From NCBI GenBank assembly GCA_047495785.1, contig JBLDXI010000048.1, positions 248,001-312,000 of the forward strand: DNA of 64,000 nt, given 5' to 3'. Each line of letters starts with the position of its first letter. The first letter of the stretch is position 1. Origin of the DNA: Lepidodermella squamata (taxonomy: Eukaryota; Animalia; Gastrotricha). The position numbers were made by a program, and so were the translations under genes. This document shows positions 13,240 through 61,945 of the stretch, piece after piece. The notes below the pieces were generated by a model, which worked only from the letters and a program-made list of their open reading frames with translations, was not told the origin of the DNA and ran no database searches.

Positions 13240-14951
13240 TAATAATAATAATAATAATAGTTATATTTTGCCTCTTCGAGACTCGAGACTGAGCGTCGTG
13301 TACCGTTTCCGGTTTTGAAGAGGGCGAAGGCAGGCGAAGAATGATCCTCACCCACCCCCACAGTCGAGGATTCTGCTTTTTGTATAGAATTCATAATTTT
13401 CAATCGAGTTTACAACCATGCGCCATTCATCTTTTTCGAACGAAACCGATTCCGCTAGTTGGACATCGGGAATAATTTTGATCTCAAAATCCTTTTCGCC
13501 GGGATTTTTTCTATTTTCTCGTTTCTTAGTGGTTTTATTTTTCTTATCCTTGACCTTATTTTTCTTATTGGTTTTCTTTTTCCGGCGAATTTCCTTAGTA
13601 AGACCTACTTTAATTAGGCTTCTATGCACTCCGTTGATCCATCTGGTTCGAGGTCTACCTCTGGGTGCAAACCACCCAAGCGGAGGCGTCCAAATATATA
13701 TTTTGTGTATTAGTCCTTCTACGTCATAGTCACGTGACCTAATTATGTGACCTAGATACCTTAGCCTTTGTTTTTCAACAATGCGGCTCACTTCAATGAG
13801 ACCTCCGCATAACGCAAGTCGAATGTCTATATTTGGAATATAGTCCATTAGGTGGACACCTACTATAGATCGAAGCCATCGATATTCAATAGTGTTTAGT
13901 CTATTTTCTTGGGCTATCGATATGTTCCACGATTCGCAGGCGTAAATGATGGTAGGTATTATAACACATGTCAGTACCTTAAGTTTTGTAGCTATGGAAA
14001 CCTGACTTTTGTTGCACATGAATTTATTCATGGCGCCGAAAACACTGCCTGCCTTAGAAATTCTGTAGTTTAGTTCCTCATCATTTTTGCCGTCACTAGT
14101 AATAATGCTCCCTAAATATTTAAATTTGGTCACTTTTTCAAGTTTTTTCCCGTTCAATTCCAATTCGTAATTTTGAGTAGCTGACTCGTCTCTAGAAATA
14201 ATCATATATTGAGTTTTTGCCGCGTTGATTTTCAAACCCAATTCGATGCAAGCCAGATCAAAAATATTAAGTAGTCGTGAAATTTCGTCGTGGTTCATGC
14301 CTAAAAGTGTTCCGTCGTCAGCAAACGCTAGTAAATTAAGGAAATCAGTCTCGCTCATAGCGGTCTCGCTGTTTGCGGTTTCGCCAATAGGAAAGCCTAA
14401 TTTTTCAGCAGATATTTTTTCGCAAATTTTGTTGAAGGTCGCTATGAATAGCAAAGGAGACAACGGGCAACCCTGTCTTAGTCCCCTGGTAACATAGAAG
14501 AAATCTTAGAGCTCAGAATCGACTCTAACAGCAACTTTATTTACTTTATATAAACTTTGAATAGCTTCAATTAAGCTGGGTTCTACACCCATATTTTGTA
14601 GGGCGGCCCATACTTTTTCCCTGTCCACCAGATCATAGGCTTTTTCGAGATCGATGAAGACTAGGTGGAGTTCCTTCTTAAAGAATATAATTTTCTCAAT
14701 AATTTGTCGGAGAACGTAAATGCAGTCTCTGGTGCCCTTAAGGGGTTGAAAACCAAATTGCAGTTTAGAAATTTTTGACCCAAATTATGCTCTCAATTTT
14801 CGTTCGAGAATAATGGCATAGAGTTTTCCTACAACACTTAAGAGGCTGATGCCTCTGTAATTTTGGCATTTTGATTTCTCACCTTTATTTTTATAAATTG
14901 GGGTAATTATAGCCGTTGACCATTCTTCTGGGTCCATATACCAACCAAATA
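13240..14951 (-). mobile_element. 5'-truncated RTE-like non-LTR retrotransposon (RT disrupted)
   Basis: YRGISLLS, VFIDLEKAYD, LRQGCPLSP, FADD, FKYLGS, YACESW, RLRYLGH, PRGRPRTRW; stops/frameshift upstream of 14463; (TTA)n tail; candidate TSD ACCAAAATAACCA at 13227-13239 and 14952-14964. Confidence 0.9.
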
Positions 14952-21800: not shown

Positions 21801-24800
21801 CGCATGTCTTCTGCACGCGCAAAAAAATCACGCGCCAAAAATCAATTGTTGAAATGACCACCTTTGTTCGTTGGCCTGGCACGAGTCTAGGCCCCGCTTT
21901 CATCACCCGAGGTCATAAGCACTTCAAATACACAACTTCATCTTGAAAGTATATTTTTCCTTATCAAATAATTATTTCTGAAGTTTGCTGTTGAAAAAAG
22001 AGTTTGATGATAGAAAAAGTAATTTGATGTTGAAAAAAGTAAATTTGATGTCAAAAAAAATATTTTCCGAGATTTCGATGTTACGAGGGCGAATTCTATG
22101 TTTCGAATTCTAAGCCCTGATGATGATGTTTTTACATCGAAACGTCGGCGAATTTTAATTTTAATTTTAAATAATTTACCGTGGTGATCCCTAACTGATT
22201 TTGACAATTTGAAATAAATTCCAGTTATGATTTTCTAGTTTCGTTTTGCGATGAGTGGAAATGGCTTTGCTAGCTCATAAAAATTGACAATAAAATGTAA
22301 TTATTTGATAATTCCTCAAATACTAAATACCTACTGGTGAATGATCAATTTTTCTTAAACTTTTCGTGTTTCAAATTTCATGGAAATAAAACTAACGAAT
22401 ATGAAATGAAATGAAATGATTTATTTTTTTCTCTTCCCCGCGACTAGACGTCTGTACCCTTTCGGGTTTTGAGGAAGGCGAAGGCAAGGCAAACCAAAAA
22501 GAAAAATTTTAGTCACCCTCCCCCACAGCCGAGAAAATCTTACTTTTGTTATAAAATTCAAAATCTTCCAGAGACTCAACTATTTGTCGCCATTCAACTC
22601 GATCTAATGCCGTTGTTTCGGTAAATGTCCAGTCAACAGTTTTTTCGGAAATTTCGGTTACATTACTACCATCTTTACGAGGTCTGCCACGGGACCCGTC
22701 GGTTTTTTTTCTTATTATATTTTCTGTTGTAAGTCCTACTTTACTTAAGCTTCTTTCAACCGCATCTAGCCATCTAGTTCGAGGTTTCCCCACCGGTCTC
22801 TTCCATTCCTTAGGCGCAACCCACCTATAAAGGTCGTAGACTGGCCCCGGTATCGGTTCACCTTTGTCGTCGACATAGGTCTCCATCCTTATTATATGAC
22901 CTAGGTAATTAAGTCGTTGTTTTTCAATTAATCTACCGACTTCAATTATTCCGCCACACATTGATAGTCTGATATCTATGTTGGGAATGTAGTCCATTAC
23001 TGTAATTCCTAAAATGCATCGCAGCCACTTATATTCTTGGGTATTTAGCGTACTTTCGTCGTCTTCCGTAATATTCCATGACTCGCAGGCATACATCATA
23101 GCTGGAATAATAACGCATTTTAATATTTTTAATTTTACCGCCAAAGAGACATGTTTTCGGTTGCACATAAATTTACTTATCGCGCCAAAGCAACTACCTG
23201 CTTTCGCAATGCGCGCTTTAAGTTCCTCGCCGATTTTGCCATCATCAGTTATAATGCTACCTAGATACTTGAACGTGCTTACTTTTTCAAGATTGCGACC
23301 CTCTAATTGTAAATTATATTTTTCATTTTTCTTTGGGTCACCACCTATAATCATATATTGAGTCTTCGCCGCGTTAATTTTGAGACCCAATTCTTTACAA
23401 GCCGCGTCGAAAATTCCTAATAACAACTTAATTTCTTTGTGATTCATGCCTAACAGCGTTCCATCATCGGCGAAAGCCAAAATATTCAGAAAATTTTTTC
23501 CCAACGGAAAGCCGACCTTTTCATTAGCGACTTTTTCACAGATTTTATTGAAAGTAGTAATAAAAAGAAGAGGAGATAAGGGGCATCCCTGCCTGAGGCC
23601 TCTATTCACGTAGAACAATTCTGATAACTTCCCATCGATTTTAACTGCCACCTCATTTTTCACGTATAGACTCTTAATGGCTGCTATTAATTCAGGGTTT
23701 ACTTTCATTTCTTCGAGAGTTTCCCATACTTTTTTCGGTCGACCAAGTCGTACGCCTTTTCTAAATCAATAAAAACTAGATGTAATTCCTGATGAAATTC
23801 TATAATTTTCTCAATGACTCGTCGTAACACAAATATACAATCTCTGGTTCCTTTAAGAGGCTGAAAACCAAATTGAAATTTGGAAATGTTCCTACCCAAC
23901 GAGGCGCGCAATTTTCTCTTCAGAATAATTGCATACAGTTTACTAATTACACTTAACAGAGTTATACCTCGGTAATTTTTACATTGCGACTTCTCCCCTT
24001 TGTTTTTATAAAGTGGGGTTATAATTGCTGAGCACCAGTCATCCGGAATTTTCTTTTCCCTCCAAATTCGATTCATTAAATTTAAAAGCCATTCATTGTT
24101 TTCCTCATCTAAAGCCTTAATCATTTCGGGTCGAATTTCGTCTATTCCTGGGGCTTTACCGTTTTTCATATGGTCAATGGCACTCCTAATTTCCTCGATA
24201 GATATTCCTTTTATATCAGAGTTCGAAGCCATATTTAGAGTTCGAAACTAACGACTAAACAGCAACAATATCTTTTGAATTTTGCTCACATTATAAACAT
24301 GCGGCCCACTGTGCAATACAATACAGTGGTAGCGGCCCGAGTTGGAAAATGGCCCACTACGGAAAAAGGTTGAGAAGCACTGCTGTAAGACTCAAACTCC
24401 TCGGAAGGACGTAGTATCAATGGAATAGTCAATCCTGAATCAGGCCAAGTCAAACCTGGTGGAGTTGGCCTCATTTCAAAATTTGCAATGGGTGCGTTTC
24501 TTTATTCTCAACAGATTTTGTTGAAAACAAGGCAAAAAACAGAGACTATTTCTTTATCCATTTATGTTAAAAACAATCAACTGTGCGTATTTCTTTATTC
24601 TGATTTTGTTAGTAGCAAAAGCAATAATCAGAGGCATTTCTTTATTCGATTTTTTGCATTAACAAAATCTCGTTTATCAAATGAAGCACTCTGATTTTGT
24701 TATTATATTAAATCAATAAAGAAATGGTTAGCTGTGTAACTGCTCTGGCGACTTGAGAAGTCAATAGAATCGGTAATATTTAGACAGGTTGTATAATTTG

Positions 24801-38269: not shown

Positions 38270-41197
38270 ATGTACGGGCAGCTCAAGCCGATGTTAGATA
38301 GCAAGTTAGAGCAGGATTCTTGTGATGGTGGCGCGACAGAGATTCCGCTAACTGTTGATACGATATGGCGTAAAATTGACAGCGAAATAGCCAGTCCTCA
38401 ACATAGTAAACGATGCTTCAACGAAAGATCGTGGGTCACTCTCCACCTCTTCATATCGTCAACGTTTCGAGACATGGCCTCCGAGCGTGAGTTTATTGTC
38501 AAGAAAGTGCTGCCCGAGTTAGCAGATTGGGCGGAGAAGATTGGCGTTCGGCTGGTTGAAACTGATTTAAGGTGGGGCGTGCCTGAAAGCTCTACATCCA
38601 ACCAAACTATCGAGACTTGCCTTGGCGAATTGGACAGCATATCGGACCAGACATCTGGACAACCGCTATTTCTTGGCCTATTGGGTGACCGATACGGTTG
38701 GGTACCAAAAAGGACCGATTTTTCAGACGAGATTGCGGCCAGATTCTTCTGGATTGATGGCGTCTCTATAACCCAGATGGAAATTATGAACGGTGCGATA
38801 AGGTAAGAAAACAGCGTCTAACTTTGCTGATTTCAGAGCTTTAGAATAGATTAGGGTTATAGACTCTCTTTTCACTAAGCATTTTGGATCTAGCCTCAGA
38901 AATCACCCGCAAAGCTCGAAAATGACCTTTCTCAAGCAAATAGCTTCAGGGAGAGAAACTGAATCCGAATTCAATGATTGAGAGAGGTCCATGATTTAGA
39001 CTGAATATCAATCAAATCAAATCTAAAGCTCCGGATGATTGATCATCGTTTTTGTGATTATAGGCCTCGCAATAAAAATGCTCTGATATGCCTAAGAAGT
39101 CCAAGTTTCGTGAAATCACTGACGCCCGATCAGGCCAAAGTATTCCTAGACGATAGCGAAATGAGCCAGGCTTTACTGTCTGCCTTGAAGAAAAATGCCG
39201 GCAAATATTTAGCTGCAGATCAAATTTATACATACGCGGCGAATCCTGTTGTGTCGAACGAGTCAAACGTCAGCATCGAATTCGAAGCAGAATTTGCTCT
39301 TAAAGTTGTTGAATTCTTCAAAGCCGCTATCATCCGATTGGTCGGTGAGAGAACGAACTTCGAGCAAATGGATTCATTAGAACAGGAAGAGCTGGATCAA
39401 ACGATTTTCTGCGACCGAATATCAACATCGACATACGGCATACAGCAATGGGTCGACGAACTATCCTCTTTGATAGAGGCCGATTTCAGCAATCAACAGA
39501 AAGATCTAAAATACTTCAAGCCAACAAAACGTCTGAGAGATGGCTTAACATTATCCGATGACTTTGACAAAGACCAAGAATTATTCTGGCCCGCTGACGA
39601 TAGTTGGACGTCAAAGCCGAGATGCTTGATAGGTCACGTCGGGCAAGGCAAAACGTCTCTCATGTGTCAACTTTTTTCTCAATTAAAAGCTGAAGGCAAA
39701 TGTTCAGTATTCGCTCATTTTTGCGGATCTCCCGTATCGTCTATGTCAACTCAAACAGAAACATTTCTGCAAAGGTTGGCATCTTTTCTGCAGTCAACAT
39801 TAGACATTCACCCGGTTGTTAAACATGAAGTTGATGGAGATTTTGCTTTGACAACGAAAGCAGTACACGATCTGCTGAAAATTGCCAGCGAAAGGCCCGA
39901 GGTGAGAATTGTTCTTCTGCTAGACTCGCCCGAAAACTTTGACGACATTGGCACAGCTGGTAGGATTCGATGGGCTAGTTTTCTCGCGACTCGGTACCCG
40001 CAGAACTGTCGCGTTCTTATAACCGCTTCCATAAATCCAGACTTGGCCATTCATTACTTTCTAGAGATGGCGAAAGCGGATGTCATTCAGATGCCACTCG
40101 CTGATATGGATCTGCGGGAAACGATCGTTAGACAATTTTACAAGCCGCTGGCGAAAAAGCTCGATCAATCTCAGTTGAAATTTTTAACTGAAAAGGAAGG
40201 CGCACATCTTCCACTGTGGCTTCAAGTCGCATGTGAGGAGCTGCGAGTTTTCGGGGATTTTCGCGGAGTTACGGCTAAAATTCAACACCTCGACCCCACT
40301 CTGGACGGCTTGCTAGTGCAGAATTTGCGAAGAATTATCGACGATAACCCGGAGCTACCTGTTATCAAACTGCTGAGATTGTTCTCCGTCGCCCCTTTAC
40401 TGCTACAAGATGAGTATCTAACGACGGCACTTGCTGATGAAAATGAAGCTGACATTCCGCCACTCATCATGGCTCGGCTGCGATTAGTTCTAAAGCACTA
40501 TTTTAGATTCAGCGTTGGAGAAGGCAGATGTTTGCAGCCGATTCATACAGCTCTGAAGCAAGCGGCTAAAGCGATATCCTGTCAAACTTCCGAGGGAGAG
40601 AGGGCTGCTAAGCGAGAACTCAGCATGTGCATTGTCAACCATGCATCTATCGAAGTGAAAATAAACTGGCTTCGGCATTTGTCTAATTTGCTGTGGGAGT
40701 CAAACTCGAGGGCCGAGCTCTTGCAGTTTCTGCTCTACGATAAAGCCTCCCGCCTTCGACCTTTCTTCAAAATTGAAATTTTAAGAGTAAGCCCCTTTAT
40801 AGCCATGAATCTTATTCGAATTAAGTCCATAAAACTGTAGAAATTTAGGTGTAGCACTTTGGTTACTACACATACCGGGATCTTGGTCAAGTCGTGTGAG
40901 CAATGCGCCCTCAAGGTAGACTTTCAGCTAAACGGCAAGCTGATGGATCTCTGCTTTGTTTGCAAAGAGAGGCTCTCAGGGCATATGGCTGTTGATGCTA
41001 TTTCCTGCGGCCGCCATCGTGATTATCCTCGAGGCTCGGCTGAGCTGATGTGCGCAATTTGTCGAAATAGTCATCCGTCGAGTTACAAGAGATGGACGCC
41101 GCTAAAAATATGTAGTCGGTGCAGCACATCTCACGACATTTGCTGTCATGTTTCTGTCGACATTTCCGAAGCTAAACATCATTTTTCAAAGATCTAG
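38270..41197 (+). CDS. DUF4062-NACHT (TEP1/NPHP3-like) STAND NTPase with C-terminal PHF5-like zinc finger, join(38270..38802, 39064..40786, 40841..41197), 870 aa
   Basis: LFISSTFRDMASERE, DLRWGV, FLGLLGDRYGW, SITQMEI (DUF4062); Walker A GHVGQGKT, Walker B IVLLLDS, PLWLQVACEELRVFG; Cys-rich last exon; AATAAA just after the stop. Confidence 0.88.
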
Positions 41198-41546
41198 CTT
41201 GTTAACGTTCAAAATAAATGCAATATTGCAGACTTCTTTGCTCATGATTTGATTAGCATTGGTCTTCGGTTTTCGGTTTTAGCGAATTTCACGTTCGTGG
41301 AGCGTGGAATGGTTGGGAGCCTTGACTTGAATAAACGTGGTACAATGGGTTGTTTCAATTACCTTGTCACTCTTTATTATCAGGTATCAGAGTGAGCCGA
41401 TGTCGGTGTAAACTAGACATTCCACCATAAATAATAAATACCCAGTCCGCCCGAAGACGAACGAGGAAGGGAAACGTGTGTACTTTTGTTCAACAAACTT
41501 CCATCAAGTTATCGACTCGAAGCTCGATGTCGTTATATCGTTAGCA

Positions 41547-41706
41547 GCGCGCCAAAACAACCACTTAGATGATTCATTCGATCGTACTTGAAGTCGCCGA
41601 ACGTAATGATAAAGTACGATAGGCCATTTGAGCACTGATTTTTTTCTACTCTCGATCGTACTATCCATATAAAATCTATAAATAGTAAAGTGGTTGTTTT
41701 GGCGCG
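41547..41706. mobile_element. Inverted-repeat (MITE-like) element at the truncation point of the GPCR pseudogene
   Basis: CGCGCCAAAACAACCACTT / AAGTGGTTGTTTTGGCGCG; outer boundaries uncertain. Confidence 0.55.
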
Positions 41707-41759
41707 ATATTAACACATCAAATAACGAGAAGCGATAACTTAAGATCATTCACCCTGCA

Positions 41760-43160: not shown

Positions 43161-43515
43161 ATGTGGGCGAAATTCTTGTTAACATTTTTTCTGGTTATTG
43201 GTCTATCAAGTAATTTTAGTTTTAGTGTTTAAAAAAATCACAATGACTATATAATTTTAACCTGTCACAGAAGCTCGGGTTTTTCGGAGAACTCCCATGA
43301 ACTGCAGATCGGACAACAACGTGCTCACGAGTGGAGAAGCAGAAACAAATGGCGCCTGTCTAGCTATTTGCACGGCACAACCTGGTTGCGTAGCAATTTC
43401 GCTCGAATCGCAAACTAAAAAGTGTCAAGTGATGTCATCGTGTTCGCGACTTGGTTACGCGGTTAACGGCGAGCAGAACTGGGCCATTGCAGGATTAGCA
43501 AACGGCAACATTTAA
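43161..43515 (+). CDS. Small secreted PAN/Apple-domain protein, join(43161..43209, 43271..43515), 97 aa
   Basis: Signal peptide MWAKFLLTFFLVIGLSKA; CLAIC-x5-C..S.....C PAN-type Cys pattern; 61-bp GT-AG intron in frame. Confidence 0.7.
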
Positions 43516-53983: not shown

Positions 53984-55059
53984 TCATGCTGACGCGGGTA
54001 GCTCGAACTCATCGATATTGACTCCTCTGTTCCAGCGAACTTCCTCGACAAGAGACTTCAAGAACAACTGCTCGTCAATGGTCTCATAATTTTGCACGAA
54101 TTCCGCTTCGGCATCCAACATTTGTCGCAGGGCCCGGCCGCTGAGATAGTAGGATTTAGCCGCGCCTAGGCCTTCCTCGATAAGCTGGCATTCGTAGTTA
54201 GATTTGACTCGATGCGCAACAGCTTTTTTTAAACGCTCGCGGGTTGATTCGTCCAGTTCGCAAAATGTCTTCCCACCGTGATGCTCGTACGCCTCGCTGT
54301 CCAGGTCGATATCAGACTTGGAACGAACGAAAATGCACTCTTGGCCATTTTTCTTCGCCTGGAGCCCGTAATCAATGTCGAACTGTGACAGCCGGTTGCC
54401 AGTCACGATGATGAGCGCGTCCATGAAGTACAGGAAATTGTCCAGGTAATACTCGGCAACCGGATGCTTCAGAGTCGCGGCTCCAGGATGGTCCCAGAAA
54501 ACGAACGAAGGGTTGAAGAAGCTTTCATACTTGGACGGCACTTCAGTTGTTTCGACAACTCCAACCGCGGCGTTTTGGCGAAGAAACGCATTGAGCAGCG
54601 TCGATTTGCCATTTCCAGCCCCGCCAATGATCGCAAAGTTGAACTTGCCCGTATCAAGGTTGTGCGATTTAGCTTTCTGCCGAAGTTCTTCCTGAGCAAG
54701 CTTTCGCTCAGCGTCGAGGGCAGCTAGCCTTTCCATTTTCTCCCCTTGGAGCTTCGCCGCAACTTCTTCATCTGTCGACAGTTGCAACTTCAACTGCAGT
54801 TGAGCTAATTGTTGCTTCATTTCCTGAAGGTGCGGCGTCATATCCTACGAATAAAAAGAACATCTAAATTGTGGATTCGGAGAAGTTATGAAATTATTTA
54901 CCACAACTTGAACAGGAGCTTGGGCATCTGATCGTGGAAGAAACTCTTTCAGCACACGGAGTAATGCAACCCCAGGGACAACATATTTCTGGATGCTTCC
55001 GTCGTTGAACTTGCAAGAAAAACATTACAATAAAAACATGTTAATCTTCTGACCGACAT
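53984..55059 (-). CDS. IRG/IIGP-like GTPase, subtype A; main exon 54844..53984, exon 55009..54902, tentative micro-exon 55059..55054
   Basis: G1 GGAGNGKS, G2 VGVVETT, G3 WDHPG, G4 RSKSD; coiled-coil N-terminus; 5' end tentative. Confidence 0.85.
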
Positions 55060-55737
55060 TTTCTTGCTTAACACGTAGAAATAAATTAGAAATGCCACCA
55101 GATTTCTCATCAATTTCTCAATCAAGAATTCACCCAGAGGTAGAAACAGGTAGGAAAACAGGTCAAAGCTCAAATCTCAGGATTGCAGGCAGCAAATCAA
55201 ACGATTAGCACAAACAACTCTTCATTTTTGCTTTTTGAAATGAAAGGGTTAAAACTGGCTGGTAACCGGCCGGGTGGGCTGTCACGGGCCAGGTTGGGTT
55301 GGGAAAAGCTACCTGTTTCCACCTGAGGATTCACTTGAATAGCGTAATACGTTGAATTCTCACTATGAAATTAAATCATTGTAGATTATATAGGAATCGT
55401 TTCAGGTAATTCATGGAATAAATTGGCTAAACAACTGAGACGCAAATTTTAGTATTAGCATGACTGATTACTGACGTCTAGCACGTCAAACATTCTTCTA
55501 TGAATTTTCCAGCATTAACAAATCAAGAGAGGGAAAGATAAATAGAGAAAATAGAAAAATACCTGCATCGCAAGCCTGGCGAATGCTTCTAATATGCTCG
55601 ATTCCAGTGGCATTTGAATATATACGTTAGGGAATGTTCCTATAAACGCAAATCAAATCAAAGTGAATTAATAAAATTTCTTGACTTTTTTATCATTATT
55701 TGAAGCGGATTTTTTAATGGTATAGCGATATCATAGT

Positions 55738-55818
55738 AGATAATACTTCAAAAAATAAGGCCAAGGATCCGTACACCAGGTGTACGGATCCTTGGCCTTA
55801 TTTTTTTAAGTATTATCT
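55738..55818. repeat. 81-bp palindrome (40-bp arms, 1 mismatch, 1-nt spacer)
   Basis: AGATAATACTT(C)AAAAAATAAGGCCAAGGATCCGTACACC-A-GGTGTACGGATCCTTGGCCTTATTTTTT(T)AAGTATTATCT. Confidence 0.95.
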
Positions 55819-56339
55819 TTTATCATTAATAGGTCTTCTTTTGCAAAGTAGATGTTCATCCGTAAATTGAAGAAATAGAAACTCGGAACAATTATTTGCT
55901 AGGAAATTTTGAATGGAAATGTATGAGTAACGAAGTATATTTAAGTAAATTGAAGGCATGATCTACGATCCAAGAATTTGGATCGCAATGCTTATCCTAG
56001 TGATACGAGCATTGGATCCAGTTTTACGATACCATCGATGCCAGTGATTTTTAATTGCTGGCACGCGATTGCTCCACGGCTTCACGTTTCTTCTTCAAGG
56101 ATTCATATTCAACGGCGCATGACGCAGCGCCGCTTTTTTCAGCTACTCAATTCATATTAACACTTCTGCAAAAAATAATTTAGCAATCTAATCTTTCCAC
56201 GTCCAAATAGAATAACTAATGTTTCCTTTTTCCTTACACCAAATGAGACACACGTTCATAAATCAATTAAACGTTACTTTGCTATAATGCACTGAAAATG
56301 TTTAGGTCGAATTTGATTTGTTGATCTGACTTCCTTATC

Positions 56340-57335
56340 ATGGGTAATCTTTTCGGCCGTACTGAAGTCATTGAGTATCGAGTCCCGCCGGAAATATCGG
56401 TATGATGCCCAAACCGCAATTCTTTTCGAAATTTGCCAAACTTTTGTTACTAGAAAATGCTCGAAACACTCCAAGCCCAAATATCGCAGCTGCAAAACAA
56501 CATCGCACATGAAACCGATAAAGCTGTGAAGCAAAAGCTGCTCGAAGAAAAGCAACGCATCGAAGCTGAGAAAGAGGCTAAGCGCAAGCAAATGGAGGCG
56601 GAAATCAAGCAGAAGGCGAAAGATTACGGCCTAAACCTGGACAAATTCAACTTCGCCATAATTGGGAACGCTGGCGTTGGCAAGTCAAGCCTAATCAATG
56701 CGCTGGTTCCGGGCGCGAAGGCTCACGTGAGCGTTGTCGAAGGCACAATGAAGCCTACGCCTTACGCCGATAACGCGAACAACGTCGTGTTCTGGGACGT
56801 GCCCGGTTCGGCAACGAAAAAGCATCCAGTTGTGAGTTATTACGCTGACAACTTCCTGTACCTGATGGACTCATTGATCATTGTGACTGGCACTCGCCTG
56901 TCTGAATTTGACGTTGGGTTTGCGAAAGAAGCTATTCGACATGGTCAGAGAGTTGTTTTCGTGAGGTCGAAAGCTGATGTGGATCTAGCCAGCGAATACT
57001 ACGACTCGGAAAATAAATATTGGGAGGACTGTCCAGTCAATGATCGAAGACGTGTGGCCGACAACGTCAGAAATAAAATCAAGACCAACTACAGAGACCA
57101 ATTTCTGGAGTACAACGTCGCGAGAATGAAGGATGGCGCGGAGGTTCCGTTCCATTTCATCAGTTCGCGAACCGTCAAAGAAATCATCGATGGCGTTGAA
57201 ACTAGCCGATGCAAGTGGCCATTGTTGGATGAGAAGCAGCTATTGAAGGGGCTATTTGAGCAACTGAAGAAAGACGGAGCTTTTCGAAATATTGATCAAT
57301 TCATTCTTCCCAAGTTTCTTGCTTCCGATTATTGA
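56340..57335 (+). CDS. IRG/IIGP-like GTPase, subtype B, join(56340..56399, 56454..57335)
   Basis: MGNLFG start; GNAGVGKSS, VSVVEGT, WDVPG, RSKAD. Confidence 0.88.
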
Positions 57336-57897
57336 TTGCTGTCAAGGTGTACTTATGTGTGAGTGTCACCAGTTGTGTTGTGAAATCCAATGAATTGTTG
57401 ATGTCAACAATTTTTGATGCGTTTCTTTTGATTTGAAACTTGAATTTGAATAAATTTCCATGTATTCACGAGATCGTATTTTTGGAAATTACTGAACATG
57501 GTGAAATATTTTCTATGGGACATGGTGAAACATACTGGCCTCTGGCCTTCCTCCAGACATTCACTTTCTATCAGTTTTATGGCGAATTTCTCTGCTCTCG
57601 GAAAAAGCTGTTGCGGCAATATTAATAAATTTTCCGTTCGATTCGCTAAATGAAATCATACTGCAAAATACACAGACATAAATGGCAAAATACATAAGTG
57701 GCAAATGTTGGAGATTTGCCTCGCAAAACCCTGACACAGAAATCCAGGCGATTGGTGGAAATCGTAGTTGATTAGTATCAGTACTATTGAGTCGCGGATT
57801 TGAGGCTGGGTCCTCTGTGCTATGGTTTTCGCATAGCTCAGTGAAATTATATCCAAACTAAGATATCATTTCAAGGAAGCTATCGCCAATTTGTCAC

Positions 57898-57938
57898 GGT
57901 TCTTTGGAGTAGTGGTTTAGCACTCTTGCTTTCTGAAT
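57898..57938 (+). pseudogene. 5' half of tRNA-Gln(CTG), truncated
   Basis: GGTTCtTTGGaGTAGTGGTTTAGCACTCT...TCTGAAT resembles the eukaryotic tRNA-Gln 5' half and abuts tRNA-Pro. Confidence 0.55.
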
Positions 57939-58010
57939 GGCAAGTTGGTCCAGTGGTATGATCCTCGCTTAGGGTGCGAGAGGTCACGGGTTCAATTCCC
58001 GGACAGGCCC
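57939..58010 (+). tRNA. tRNA-Pro(AGG), possibly degenerate
   Basis: CTCGC-TTAGGGT-GCGAG anticodon arm, TTCAATT loop; two acceptor-stem mismatches and one T-stem mismatch. Confidence 0.8.
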
Positions 58011-58061
58011 CTGTGTTTTTAGGCCGAAACAAGCAAGTGACAAACTTTGTCCAGAAGAAGC

Positions 58062-58135
58062 GACATCCGTTGCTCAATTGGCAGAGCGTCTGACTCCAGA
58101 TCAGAAGGTTGCGTGTTCAAGTCACGTCGGGGTCA
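58062..58135 (+). tRNA. tRNA-Trp(CCA)
   Basis: TCTGA-CTCCAGA-TCAGA arm, GCGTG-TTCAAGT-CACGT; one extra nt in the acceptor stem. Confidence 0.85.
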
Positions 58136-58201
58136 TAATTTTGAAATTATTGCAGTTTATTTGTCAGCTCACAGCCTGCTTCAGGTTAGCTGAACTCATC
58201 T

Positions 58202-58275
58202 GGCCGCTTAGCTCAGTTGGTTAGAGCGTCGTGCTAATAACGCGAAGGTCGTGAGTTCGATCCTCCCAGTGGCCA
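58202..58275 (+). tRNA. tRNA-Ile(AAT)
   Basis: GGCCGCT/AGTGGCC acceptor, TCGTG-CTAATAA-CGCGA arm, T-run downstream; one T-stem mismatch. Confidence 0.9.
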
Positions 58276-58344
58276 CTCATTTTTTGGCGTGAATACATCT
58301 CTCAATAGGAGGAAAAGCTATTGTGCAATAACATCGCCACCAAA

Positions 58345-58430
58345 CCCGCGATAGCTCAGCTGGTAGAGCGGAGGACTGTAGATGCAACGCAGCTATCCTT
58401 AGGTCGGTGGTTCAAGTCCGCCTCGCGGGA
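58345..58430 (+). tRNA. tRNA-Tyr(GTA) with 13-nt intron (58382-58394)
   Basis: CCCGCGA/TCGCGGG acceptor, GAGGA-CTGTAG-[intron]-ATCCTT, canonical D and T arms. Confidence 0.93.
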
Positions 58431-58830
58431 GTTGTCAGCTTTTTGAGTGAAAAATTGTGTAATTATTATTACAAATGTTTGCTGAGGGCTCTCGTCCATG
58501 CTGTGATGCAACAGTCGCTATGCCCGAGTGTTAACTATGCCATGTTACTCACTGCCTGTTGCTCCCATAGATATAATTCAGTTGCTTCTTTCACTCTGAT
58601 ATTATCTTTAGATAGTAAACAAACAGCTTTTTCCTACTGCGCCTTCTTTTATTTGAAAATCTCAGGCTCCAGGAAACAGAAAACCACAAAGAAAGTGGAC
58701 ATCAATGAACTGAAGCTACATCTGTGAAAGAAAAGACATCAAAACTTTATCACCGAATCTCAACACATATGTAGCTTGAAAAATTGCAAAGCAGGAGCTC
58801 AGACAAATTGCTTAGATCACTCTTCCATGT

Positions 58831-59841
58831 TCATGCTGACACGGGCAGCTGGAACTCATCAATAATGACTCCTCTGTTCCGGCGAGCTCCCTCGACTAGA
58901 CATTGTAAGAACAACTGCTCGTCAATGAACGGGTACCGTTGCTCAGAAGCGGCTTCGAAATCCAACATTTTCTGCAACGCGCGGCCGCTGAGATAGAAGA
59001 ACTTCGCCGAGCCAAGTCCGTTCTCGAAAAGCTGGCTTTCGTAGTTCGATTTGACTCGAAGTGCAATGTCATTTGTGAAACACTGGCGAGTTGATTCGTC
59101 AAGCTCGCAAAATGTCTTCCCACCATATTTGTCGTGCGCCTCGTTGTCCAGGTCGATATCAGACTTGGAACGAACGAAAATGCACTCTTGACCCATTTTC
59201 TTAGCCTGCAGACCGAATTCAATGTCGAACTGTGACAGCCGGTTGCCAGTCACGATGATGAGCGCGTCCATGAAGTACAGGAAATTGTCCAGGTAATACT
59301 CGCCAGCGGGATGCTTCGGGGTCATGGCTCCAGGATGGTCCCAGAAAACCAACGCAGGGTTGAAGGGGCTCACGTACTGTGATGGGGCCTCTGTCGTCTC
59401 GACCACTCCAACTGCAACGTTTCGGCGCAGAAACGCGTTAAGCAGCGTCGATTTTCCGCTCCCAGGGCCGCCGATAATCGCAAAGTTGAATTTGCTCGTA
59501 TCAAGGTTGTGCGATTTAGCTTTCTGCCGAAGTTGCTCCTCAGTGCGCTTCCGCTCAGCCTCCCGTGCCGCCAGTTTCTCCTCTTTCTCTTTTTCAAGCC
59601 GCTGAATAACTTCCTTATCTTCCGACACGCGCATCATCAACTGCACTTGGTCCAATTGCATCTTCATCGCCGTAAGTTCGGGCGTCATGTCCTGTACAAA
59701 AAACCACGTAAGCCCACTGGAATGCGGAGAGCGATAAGGTCTTACCACGACTTGAACAGGAACTTTCGATTCTGAGTGTGGTTGCCGCAGCTGCTCGAAT
59801 AATGCCATCACTGGACCGGCTAAGGCTGTCGAAAAGTCCAT
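58831..59841 (-). CDS. IRG/IIGP-like GTPase, subtype A, join(59841..59746, 59691..58831)
   Basis: GGPGSGKS, WDHPG, RSKSD; 54-bp in-frame intron at the PVQVV|DMTP position shared with paralogs. Confidence 0.88.
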   Translation of the reverse strand: MDFSTALAGPVMALFEQLRQPHSESKVPVQVVVRPYRSPHSSGLTWFFVQDMTPELTAMKMQLDQVQLMMRVSEDKEVIQRLEKEKEEKLAAREAERKRTEEQLRQKAKSHNLDTSKFNFAIIGGPGSGKSTLLNAFLRRNVAVGVVETTEAPSQYVSPFNPALVFWDHPGAMTPKHPAGEYYLDNFLYFMDALIIVTGNRLSQFDIEFGLQAKKMGQECIFVRSKSDIDLDNEAHDKYGGKTFCELDESTRQCFTNDIALRVKSNYESQLFENGLGSAKFFYLSGRALQKMLDFEAASEQRYPFIDEQLFLQCLVEGARRNRGVIIDEFQLPVSA

Positions 59842-60935
59842 TAGGTCATCCTGAGTCTAAAATCATAAAATATTTATGATTTATTAATATAATAATTTAA
59901 CGATCGAACCAGGGAACCGCATTTGACCCAATTATCACTGTTCGAATATGCGGATATGCTGCCGGGATACTTTTACATTTTACAATTAGACGTTCATCAT
60001 TAGACGTTATTTTTCAATATACACTCACGCCATTCGATTTAGCTTCCTCTCGCTGCTGCCCCAATACGGCTGCCTGCGGTTCGCTGGAGTCCTGTATCGG
60101 AATACCAGGGACATGCGGAGCTTCTAACAAAAATTCGGGAGGATGATATGGGTTTAGATTCAGAAATAAGTTGAATACCTTGTTGCGAATTTTCATCTGT
60201 AGCCGACATCATTGAATTTAAAGGATCCATCTATGAGTATCATAAGCAATAGCAGATATTTGCAATCCATGATCAATAAGGATCCAGTCAGATATCATAC
60301 ATAGCATCACGTTTCAGGAAAAATTTAGTCAGAATTAAGCCAAGATTGGATTGTCACCTATCTAAAAGTACAAATAGGGTGGGCCCAGATAAGCAGATTT
60401 TGGGTCGCCAAGCGAAAAAGGAGAGCGAAACATTGCTAAACTACAAACGTTAACCCACAATCGATGAACGCTCTGACAAAGGGCCATGGTGATTGCAAGA
60501 AGAGTAAACATAAATTAAAGTAACAATATTGCGTTGAAAAGTATAGTTTTTATCGGGAAAAGGTCGCCAAATAAAACAATTGAAGAAATAAATGACACGC
60601 TGTGAATGGTGTGTGAATACTCATATTTAAAACAGCGCAGCAATTCGCTGTTAGCTTGAAAAATGAATAATCTTGATCAAGCAAACGTTGGAGATGTGGA
60701 ACGATCGCGTGCCAACAATGAATCACGATAAATATGAATTATTTTCATTGTAATATTTTTACGTTGTTCTGATGGAAGAAATTGCACTTTTTGTTGTTTT
60801 TTCCCTTTAAAAACTGAAATGATGTGAGGCGCGAATTAGAGATATTTTACAACGAAATGTTTCTTTACTTGCAATGATGATTTGGTGATCTAATAGTATG
60901 CATGAAATGTTCAGGTTTAGACCTTCTTTTTCAAG

Positions 60936-61945
60936 ATGGATTTATTGAAAAATGTGGTTCTTCCTGCGGCGCAATTAATCCAGTTGTTGAAGCCACGCTC
61001 AACAGCTAAAGCCCCTGTTCAAGTCGTGGTAGGCCCTTTTCCATTCTGAGCATTACAGGCGGGTGTATGTACGTTCTTTTGCAGGACATGACGCCGCAAA
61101 TTATGGCAATGAAGCAGCAGCTAAATCACCTGCAGATGATGCTACTCGTGGCGAAAGATAAGGAAGTTGCTCGGCGGCATGAAGACGAGAAAAAGGAGAA
61201 GCAGGCAGCACTGGAGGCCGAGCGTCAGCGCGCACAGGAACAACTTCAGCAAAAGGCGAAATCGCACAACCTTGATACGAGCAAGTTCAACTTTGCGATC
61301 ATCGGCGCGGCTGGCAACGGCAAATCAACTCTGCTCAATGCGTTTCTTGGGCAAAACGTAGCAGTTGGAATAGTCGAGACAACAGAGGAGCCGTCGCAGC
61401 ACGTGAGCTCCTTCAACCCTGCGTTGGTTTTCTGGGACCATCCTGGAGCCATGACCCCGAAGCATCCCGCTGGCGAGTATTACCTGGACAATTTCCTGTA
61501 CTTCATGGACGCGCTCATCATCGTGACTGGCAACCGGTTGTCACAGTTCGACATTCAATTCGGGCTCCAGGCTAAGAAAAATGGCCAGGAGTGCATTTTC
61601 GTCCGTACGAAGTCTGATGTGGACCTGGACAACGAAGCTTACGAGCATCATGGTGGGAAGACATTTTGCGAACTGGACGTGTCAACTCGCCTGCGTTTGA
61701 CAAATGATGTCGCTCATCGGGTCAAATCGAACTACGAAAGCCAGCTTTTCGAGAACGGACTCGGCTCGGCCAAGTTATACTACCTCAGCGGACGCACGTT
61801 GCAGCAAATGATGGACTTTGAATCCGGATCCGAGCCGAAATACCCGATCATCGACGAGAAGTTGTTTCTGCAATGTCTAGTCGAGGGAGCTCGCAGGAAC
61901 CGAGGAATCAATATCGATGAGTTCCAGCTGCCCGTGTCAGCGTGA
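60936..61945 (+). CDS. IRG/IIGP-like GTPase, subtype A, join(60936..61028, 61085..61945)
   Basis: GAAGNGKS, VGIVETT, WDHPG, RTKSD. Confidence 0.88.

Follow-up and report, generated by a model that had tools for sequence, protein, structure and literature searches.

The TeTIR/DUF4062-NACHT proteins are STAND (NLR-like) receptors that include human TEP1, NWD1, NWD2, TTC41 and NPHP3 as well as the DDB_G0287407-like proteins of invertebrates. They have in common an N-terminal DUF4062 domain, a NACHT-type ATPase and a helical domain, and in the published architecture they end in WD40 or TPR repeats (bioRxiv 10.64898/2026.05.01.722283; bioRxiv 10.64898/2026.09.21.753143). Only in 2026 were these proteins recognised as TIR-like NADase receptors: DUF4062, or TeTIR, is a TIR-like NADase domain, and human TEP1 hydrolyses NAD+ through its catalytic residue E1008 (bioRxiv 10.64898/2026.05.01.722283; bioRxiv 10.64898/2026.09.21.753143). 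A stretch of 64,000 nucleotides from the gastrotrich Lepidodermella squamata (contig JBLDXI010000048.1, positions 248,001 to 312,000; hereafter the window) harbors a gene whose 870-amino-acid (aa) product appears to be a STAND protein of this family in which the WD40 or TPR repeats have been replaced by a new C-terminal module of about 100 aa, probably holding three zinc ions. The probability of this reading is put at roughly 60%. The protein family is known, and the combination of TeTIR domain, NACHT ATPase and zinc module is absent from both family-defining preprints. The likeness to the family extends to the NADase residues of TEP1, all of which are present here, and the closest named relative is a protein of the clam Mercenaria mercenaria (P0003). 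The differences lie at the two ends: there is no TROVE/VWA N-terminal extension, and the Cys/His-rich module stands where the relatives have their repeats.

The gene lies on the + strand and has three exons (Table 1), which splice into a coding sequence of 2613 nt with zero internal stops. Its processing can be followed in X2, a 2015 sequencing run whose RNA nature is guessed and whose Logan contigs were matched to the gene. The contigs show no differences from the gene and cover the exons alone, with zero depth upstream of 38242, at 38847–38967 (within intron 1) and past about 41146; coverage stops one bin ahead of the AATAAA hexamer. For intron 1, the X2 joints from 38688/38736 to 39062/39113 exceed like joints by about 261 nt, which is the length of the intron. 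For intron 2, a single X2 contig carries the joint 40786|40841, in which 54 nt with GT..AG ends are skipped. In another run, X1, this stretch is found as a single unspliced contig with a 100% match, and the run is probably the source assembly. The splice of intron 2 matters most for what follows, since the tail depends on it: with the intron left in, translation would break off at 40838–40840. This splice is supported by the one low-depth contig together with homology. A related protein, P0001 (932 aa), is encoded by a single uninterrupted open reading frame (ORF; L001:163–2961) on an ENA metagenome scaffold, and the alignment of the spliced 870-aa protein to it crosses both junctions and is gap-free over that of intron 1. 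The locus is thus a real, spliced and expressed animal-type three-exon gene for an NLR-like protein. Judged by its product, whose nearest named relative is a mollusc protein, the gene is also animal-like in sequence.

The domain content follows the order of the family. Exon 1 matches the Pfam model DUF4062 (PF13271) over residues 61–148 with an E-value of 5.5e-10 (39.8 bits, cutoff 24.7), and this domain lies directly upstream of the NACHT ATPase. In exon 2, the Pfam models NACHT (E 4.2e-5, 23.9 bits against a gathering cutoff of 26.7) and NPHP3_N (E 1e-4, 23.0 bits against a cutoff of 24.8) both match slightly under threshold, over exon-2 residues 185–343. There is a Walker A motif, GHVGQGKT (G-x4-GKT), at residues 368–375 (39632–39655), and a Walker B-like VLLLDS is also found. 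By homology, with the relative P0003 matching PF24883 and PF00931, the protein is very likely a NACHT STAND NTPase.

Is the N-terminal domain equipped to cleave NAD+? In TEP1, the residues that matter in mutagenesis are F902, S905, R908, R914, R942-W943, C959, R976 and E1008 (bioRxiv 10.64898/2026.09.21.753143). When matched by motif and by spacing from the Phe, rather than by alignment to TEP1 itself, every one of them has a counterpart in the present protein. The offsets are identical for F61 (F902, 0), S64 (S905, +3), R67 (R908, +6), R73 (R914, +12) and R101-W102-G103 (R942-W943(-G), +40), and nearly so for C117 (+56, against +57 for C959); R141 stands at +80 where R976 is at +74, and E171, the putative catalytic glutamate encoded at 38780–38782, stands at +110 where E1008 is at +106. 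Since all of the functional residues of TEP1 have counterparts, the N-terminal effector domain is predicted to be a catalytically competent NADase, and the protein would be expected to have NADase activity.

The repeats, on the other hand, are missing. No WD40, TPR or other repeat model in Pfam matches exon 2 or exon 3, and there is no TPR or WD40 ORF downstream of the gene in the window, where the next coding feature on the + strand is a PAN-domain exon at 43297. A transcript that runs on into repeat exons was considered and rejected: the stop codon is followed by an AATAAA hexamer, the homologue ends alike, and downstream ORFs with TPR or WD40 repeats are lacking. Much of this had been read from the letters alone in an earlier note on this DNA, which described a DUF4062 and NACHT protein with a third exon spliced to the NACHT exon, quoted the exon 3 peptide (an exact match to the translation) and had the protein end without WD40 or TPR repeats. 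It had also, correctly, related DUF4062 to the TIR/NDT fold; the two 2026 preprints report NADase activity of this domain in TEP1.

In place of the repeats, exon 3 encodes a tail of 118 aa that reads KFRC...CEQC...CFVC...CGRH...CAIC...CSRC...CCH and then stops (translation of 40841–41194). Counted from tail residue 1, the candidate ligands are C4, C19xxC22, C38xxC41, C56xxH59, C71xxC74, C91xxC94 and C101-C102-H103. The tail holds 12 Cys and 6 His, and its Cys content is 10%, against 1.9% over the remaining protein. Of the 331 stop-free segments of the window (at least 60 aa, six frames), this one alone packs five C-x2-[C/H] motifs into 118 residues, the runner-up having three. Because this density is singular among the window's segments, the Cys pattern is taken as real and not as a chance product of local composition.

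An exhaustive phmmer search of 1.84 billion representative proteins with exon 3 gave P0001 as the sole true relative of the tail (E 5e-14, P0001 residues 788–904). The second match, P0002, is low-complexity and false. The 870-aa protein and P0001 align end to end, from Met1 to the tail, with 38% identity and an E-value of 0; at the N-terminus, MYGQLKP here is aligned with MYASLKP (conserved MYxxLKP). P0001 likewise matches DUF4062 (PF13271, E 7e-9), is also without WD40 or TPR repeats, and ends just past the Cys/His module. It is 29% identical (E 1e-81) to the Mercenaria mercenaria protein P0003, a 'TPR repeat-containing protein DDB_G0287407-like' with Pfam matches to NPHP3_N (PF24883), DUF4062 and NB-ARC (PF00931), and a search with P0001 retrieves TPR-bearing DUF4062-NPHP3_N proteins, such as P0004 and P0005.

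The two tails are 34% identical. Invariant in both are C4, C19, C22, C38, C41, C56, H59, C71, C74, C91, C94, C101 and H103, and also H113; several motifs outside the ligands (KFRC, K-x-DF-x-LN, HR-x-YP and YK-x-W) are unchanged as well. The doubled Cys at C102 is not shared, and P0001 has instead an extra Cys ahead of the first pair. In both proteins the tail is basic, with an isoelectric point (pI) of 8.8, while the remainder is acidic (pI 5.5–5.6).

It could be argued that the tail serves no function or arose by accident, as the product of a recent exonisation or an artefact of annotation or splicing. There are very few homologues, and the contig that carries the splice has a depth of 4.69 in a run guessed to be RNA. 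However, the module occurs in the same position in the 38%-identical protein of another organism, where it is encoded without introns, and the two tails agree at all Cys/His ligand candidates and at about 27 further residues. The open frame of exon 3, moreover, begins exactly at the boundary of the module, and in Cys density it stands far apart from the other segments of the window. That the tail is such an appendage is scarcely credible.

How far does the module reach beyond these two proteins? A sibling of P0001 in the same 90% cluster, P0008, is encoded on a 7.4-kb metagenome contig (L002). Its downstream neighbor, at L002 5982–7420, is a split gene with an ANF_receptor domain, and the host organism is for that reason taken to be a eukaryote. 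The NLR-like gene itself is all that the window and L002 have in common in a synteny comparison. When exon 2, full-length P0001 and a tail profile were each used in word-indexed searches, no further tail-bearing proteins came up, and the two-sequence tail profile found no further relative in the 90%-clustered protein set. Scans of JGI metagenomes with the tail and NACHT alignments gave nothing, and a tail-like module was found neither in the viral contigs of IMG/VR nor in the prokaryotic genomes of GTDB. The product of the exon-2 ORF is not on record by exact look-up. In a protein-atlas feature search, the clusters returned were all archaeal 'multiple Zn-finger' ones at 0.85, no better than chance, and the tail of P0001 brought up no named cluster. 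As judged from these searches, the module is new and restricted to a lineage, without detectable relatives beyond the P0001 family.

What kind of module is it? The earlier note had seen in the tail a relative of the spliceosomal SF3b subunit PHF5A/Rds3, integrated into the receptor as a sensor or decoy. PHF5A (SF3b14b; PF03660; PDB 5SYB) has 13 Cys, of which 12 bind three Zn, arranged as five CXXC motifs and two single Cys; the pairing is permuted, in that ZnF1 is made from the first and fourth motifs, ZnF2 from the second and fifth, and ZnF3 from the third and the two single Cys. Its fold is a trefoil knot, and its conservation among eukaryotes is very strong (PMC5458519). The note's account of this Cys layout was correct. 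The formal ligand count also agrees, since one Cys, five pairs and one Cys can be fitted to the tail (C4, five C-x2-C/H pairs, C101), which probably also has three zinc ions, and the invariant C4 is given a role only under the PHF5A scheme. The count of twelve does not hold, however: H103 and H113 are also invariant, which makes 13–14 candidates, and the conserved H103 is without a role in the PHF5A arrangement. The third pair of the tail, in addition, is CxxH. The spacers between ligands in human PHF5A are 11/3/12/8/10/9 (positions consistent with the Y36, V37, C40, 13 Cys and 110 aa of PMC5458519), and all six differ from those of the tail, 14/15/14/11/16/6; the ligands span 98 residues in the tail against 75 in PHF5A. 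The local motifs that the note had likened to those of PHF5A (LVRICDEC, CVIC and VSDAYYC) belong to other pairs there, and they are not preserved in P0001.

The database searches point the same way. An hmmscan of Pfam-A with either tail gave no match to PF03660 (PHF5) at E ≤ 1 or at E ≤ 10, NCBIfam yielded neither PHF5 nor a significant zinc-finger family, and no PHF5A or Rds3 chain was found in the PDB by phmmer with the tail or by hmmsearch with the two-sequence profile (E ≤ 10), the only matches being at chance level (MANF and YydG, E ≥ 0.16). Nor did the protein-atlas feature searches return a PHF5 cluster for either tail. Because PHF5A is so highly conserved across eukaryotes, a copy taken up recently ought still to show its origin, and the tail has no profile or pairwise similarity to it. 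PHF5A differs also in being a free subunit of 110 aa, while the tail is the C-terminal domain of an 870-aa protein. That the tail has the PHF5A/Rds3 trefoil-knot fold with permuted CxxC pairs, as an integrated decoy or sensor mimicking the SF3b subunit, is therefore very improbable. The same low odds are given to the broader idea of a PHF5A-like or independently evolved permuted zinc knot on a NADase-NACHT receptor, which would guard or mimic a spliceosome surface as the decoys of plant NLRs do; every sequence-level test went against it, and the note's spliceosome decoy is left unsupported.

A simpler arrangement is available. The invariant C101-x-H103 constitutes a sixth pair, and with six pairs a non-permuted scheme becomes possible, in which the first pair is combined with the second, the third with the fourth and the fifth with the sixth. 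The tail would then most simply consist of three successive four-ligand zinc sites, namely C19/C22/C38/C41, C56/H59/C71/C74 and C91/C94/C101/H103. The first two of these putative sites are zinc-ribbon-like in their spacing, which is CxxC-x15-CxxC for pairs 1 and 2 and CxxH-x11-CxxC for pairs 3 and 4. Such spacings fit those of zinc ribbons and of the LSD1-type finger (CxxC-x16-CxxC), and the NCBIfam model of the latter, TIGR01053, matches tail residues 55–75 (C..HR.YP.G....C..C), so that pairs 3 and 4 fall within a single finger. This match (E 0.038, 13.6 bits) is below the threshold of 15.5 bits and covers one of the three putative sites, and Pfam gives no match, so that it is to be treated as a weak lead. 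From the conserved ligands we infer that the tail binds zinc with this pairing, and it is probably a small conserved module with three zinc ions.

Zinc modules of this size need not be sensors. Alternatively, the tail might be a cross-braced zinc adaptor or oligomerisation module, similar to a RING, B-box or ZZ domain, which serves in partner recruitment or localisation, while the trigger is sensed elsewhere, for instance by a partner or by the helices that follow the NACHT domain. At about 100 aa the tail is short compared with the usual sensor repeats of STAND proteins, many three-zinc modules are interaction domains, and the evenly spaced ligand pairs would fit cross-bracing. Against this stands the absence of any match to a RING, B-box, ZZ, PHD, LIM, UBP, zinc-ribbon or other zinc-finger Pfam model at E ≤ 10 in either tail, as well as the fact that the C-terminal position in STAND proteins is typically that of a sensor or autoinhibitory domain. 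An adaptor is the main alternative to be kept in mind, albeit an unlikely one.

If the tail is instead the sensor of a TeTIR-NACHT receptor, a mechanism can be proposed on the model of Apaf-1, plant TNLs and TEP1. The zinc module, which is basic (pI 8.8) on an otherwise acidic protein (pI 5.5), would serve to bind the ligand or to hold the receptor inactive. Once it binds a trigger, which might be a protein or a nucleic acid, the NACHT ATPase would be free to oligomerise, and oligomerisation would gather the N-terminal TIR-like domains and switch on NAD+ hydrolysis by induced proximity. The outcome would presumably be NAD+ depletion, cell death or signalling. Activation of TIR NADases by induced proximity is established for plant TNLs and for SARM1-type TIRs and has been proposed for TEP1.

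Several points weigh against a zinc-tailed NADase receptor of this kind. The conservation of the module is measured on a single pair of sequences, and the sequential three-site scheme leaves one of the residues invariant in that pair, C4, unused. The AlphaFold2 models of the tail, with predicted local distance difference test (pLDDT) scores of 43.9 from the single sequence and 32.4 from the two-sequence alignment, are too poor to use; a Foldseek search of the PDB with the better of these low-confidence models gave nothing at E ≤ 0.001, only noise, and no PHF5A. The Pfam scores for the NACHT domain are slightly under their gathering cutoffs. Human NWD1, NWD2 and NPHP3 have no or near-no NADase activity in vitro (bioRxiv 10.64898/2026.05.01.722283), and conserved residues thus do not guarantee an active enzyme. 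Finally, the sensor role is argued by analogy with other STAND proteins, whose sensors lie at the C-terminus, and the tail could instead be an adaptor or oligomerisation module.

The exchange of repeats for another kind of domain has a parallel in plants, in the TNL receptors and in those NLRs that have integrated domains (NLR-ID), where the notion of an NLR joined to an uncommon domain other than repeats also holds. The present protein differs from them in that its ATPase is of the NACHT and not the NB-ARC type, and in having no leucine-rich repeats. In plant NLRs, the integrated domains can be recognised as copies of the host proteins that are targeted (WRKY, HMA and others), whereas for the tail there is no match among known families of host proteins. 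If the reading is right, animals, like plants and bacteria, exchange the recognition end of their STAND receptors. A compact and apparently unique zinc module that replaces the repeats, with the NADase residues intact, would also be a putative sensor small enough to be handled with ease in a search for ligands.

Between 13 and 21 kb downstream of the NLR-like gene, at 53984–61945, is a cluster of four genes on alternating strands, each a single ORF, whose products are GTPases of the IIGP/IRG-like (interferon-inducible) type and match Pfam IIGP with E-values from 5.5e-19 to 1.8e-22. They constitute a second gene family of the innate-immunity type in the neighborhood. Together with the biology of the family, this nearby cluster suggests an immune role for the NLR-like gene.

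Table 1. Position of the NLR-like gene and of other features in the 64,000-nt window (position 1 is its first nucleotide)
Feature	Position	Strand	Remarks
Exon 1	38270–38802	+	Starts at ATG; residues 1–177 plus 2 nt; bulk of the TeTIR/DUF4062 TIR-like NADase domain
Intron 1	38803–39063	+	261 nt, GT..AG, phase 2; read from sequence
Exon 2	39064–40786	+	Residues 178–752; end of the TeTIR domain, NACHT-type P-loop NTPase, then helical region
Intron 2	40787–40840	+	54 nt, GTAAGC..CTGTAG, phase 0; in-frame TAG at 40838–40840
Exon 3	40841–41197	+	Residues 753–870, the 118-aa Cys/His-rich tail; ligand core 40850–41149; stop TAG 41195–41197
AATAAA polyadenylation-signal-like hexamer	41213–41218	+	16 nt past the stop codon; read from sequence
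MITE-like element	41540–41714		About 175 bp
PAN/Apple-domain ORF	43297–43512	+	PF00024, E 4.7e-5
IIGP/IRG-like GTPase ORF	53984–54838	-	
IIGP/IRG-like GTPase ORF	56457–57332	+	
IIGP/IRG-like GTPase ORF	58831–59838	-	
IIGP/IRG-like GTPase ORF	61067–61942	+	
Small ORF, 134 aa	33607–34011	-	Paralogous to the following
Small ORF, 139 aa	36347–36766	-	Paralogous to the preceding
RVT_1 reverse-transcriptase ORF	13348–14460	-	E 8.6e-9
RVT_1 reverse-transcriptase ORF	22509–23705	-	E 1.7e-18

About 340 nt past the stop codon of the NLR-like gene begins an element that resembles a miniature inverted-repeat transposable element (MITE), with terminal inverted repeats of 27 nt that are 89% complementary. 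The depth of run X1 in the bin at 41509–41600 is about 29,500, against 52 for the adjoining gene, and the element is accordingly very high-copy in the genome. Beyond it, the PAN/Apple-domain ORF is presumably an exon of the next downstream gene, unrelated to the NLR-like gene.

Just upstream of the NLR-like gene, the two paralogous small ORFs have in common an N-terminal KKEKExxVGF-T-RIP motif and hydrophobic stretches that resemble membrane segments, with no Pfam match. Farther upstream, the two RVT_1 ORFs are retroelement remnants or copies.

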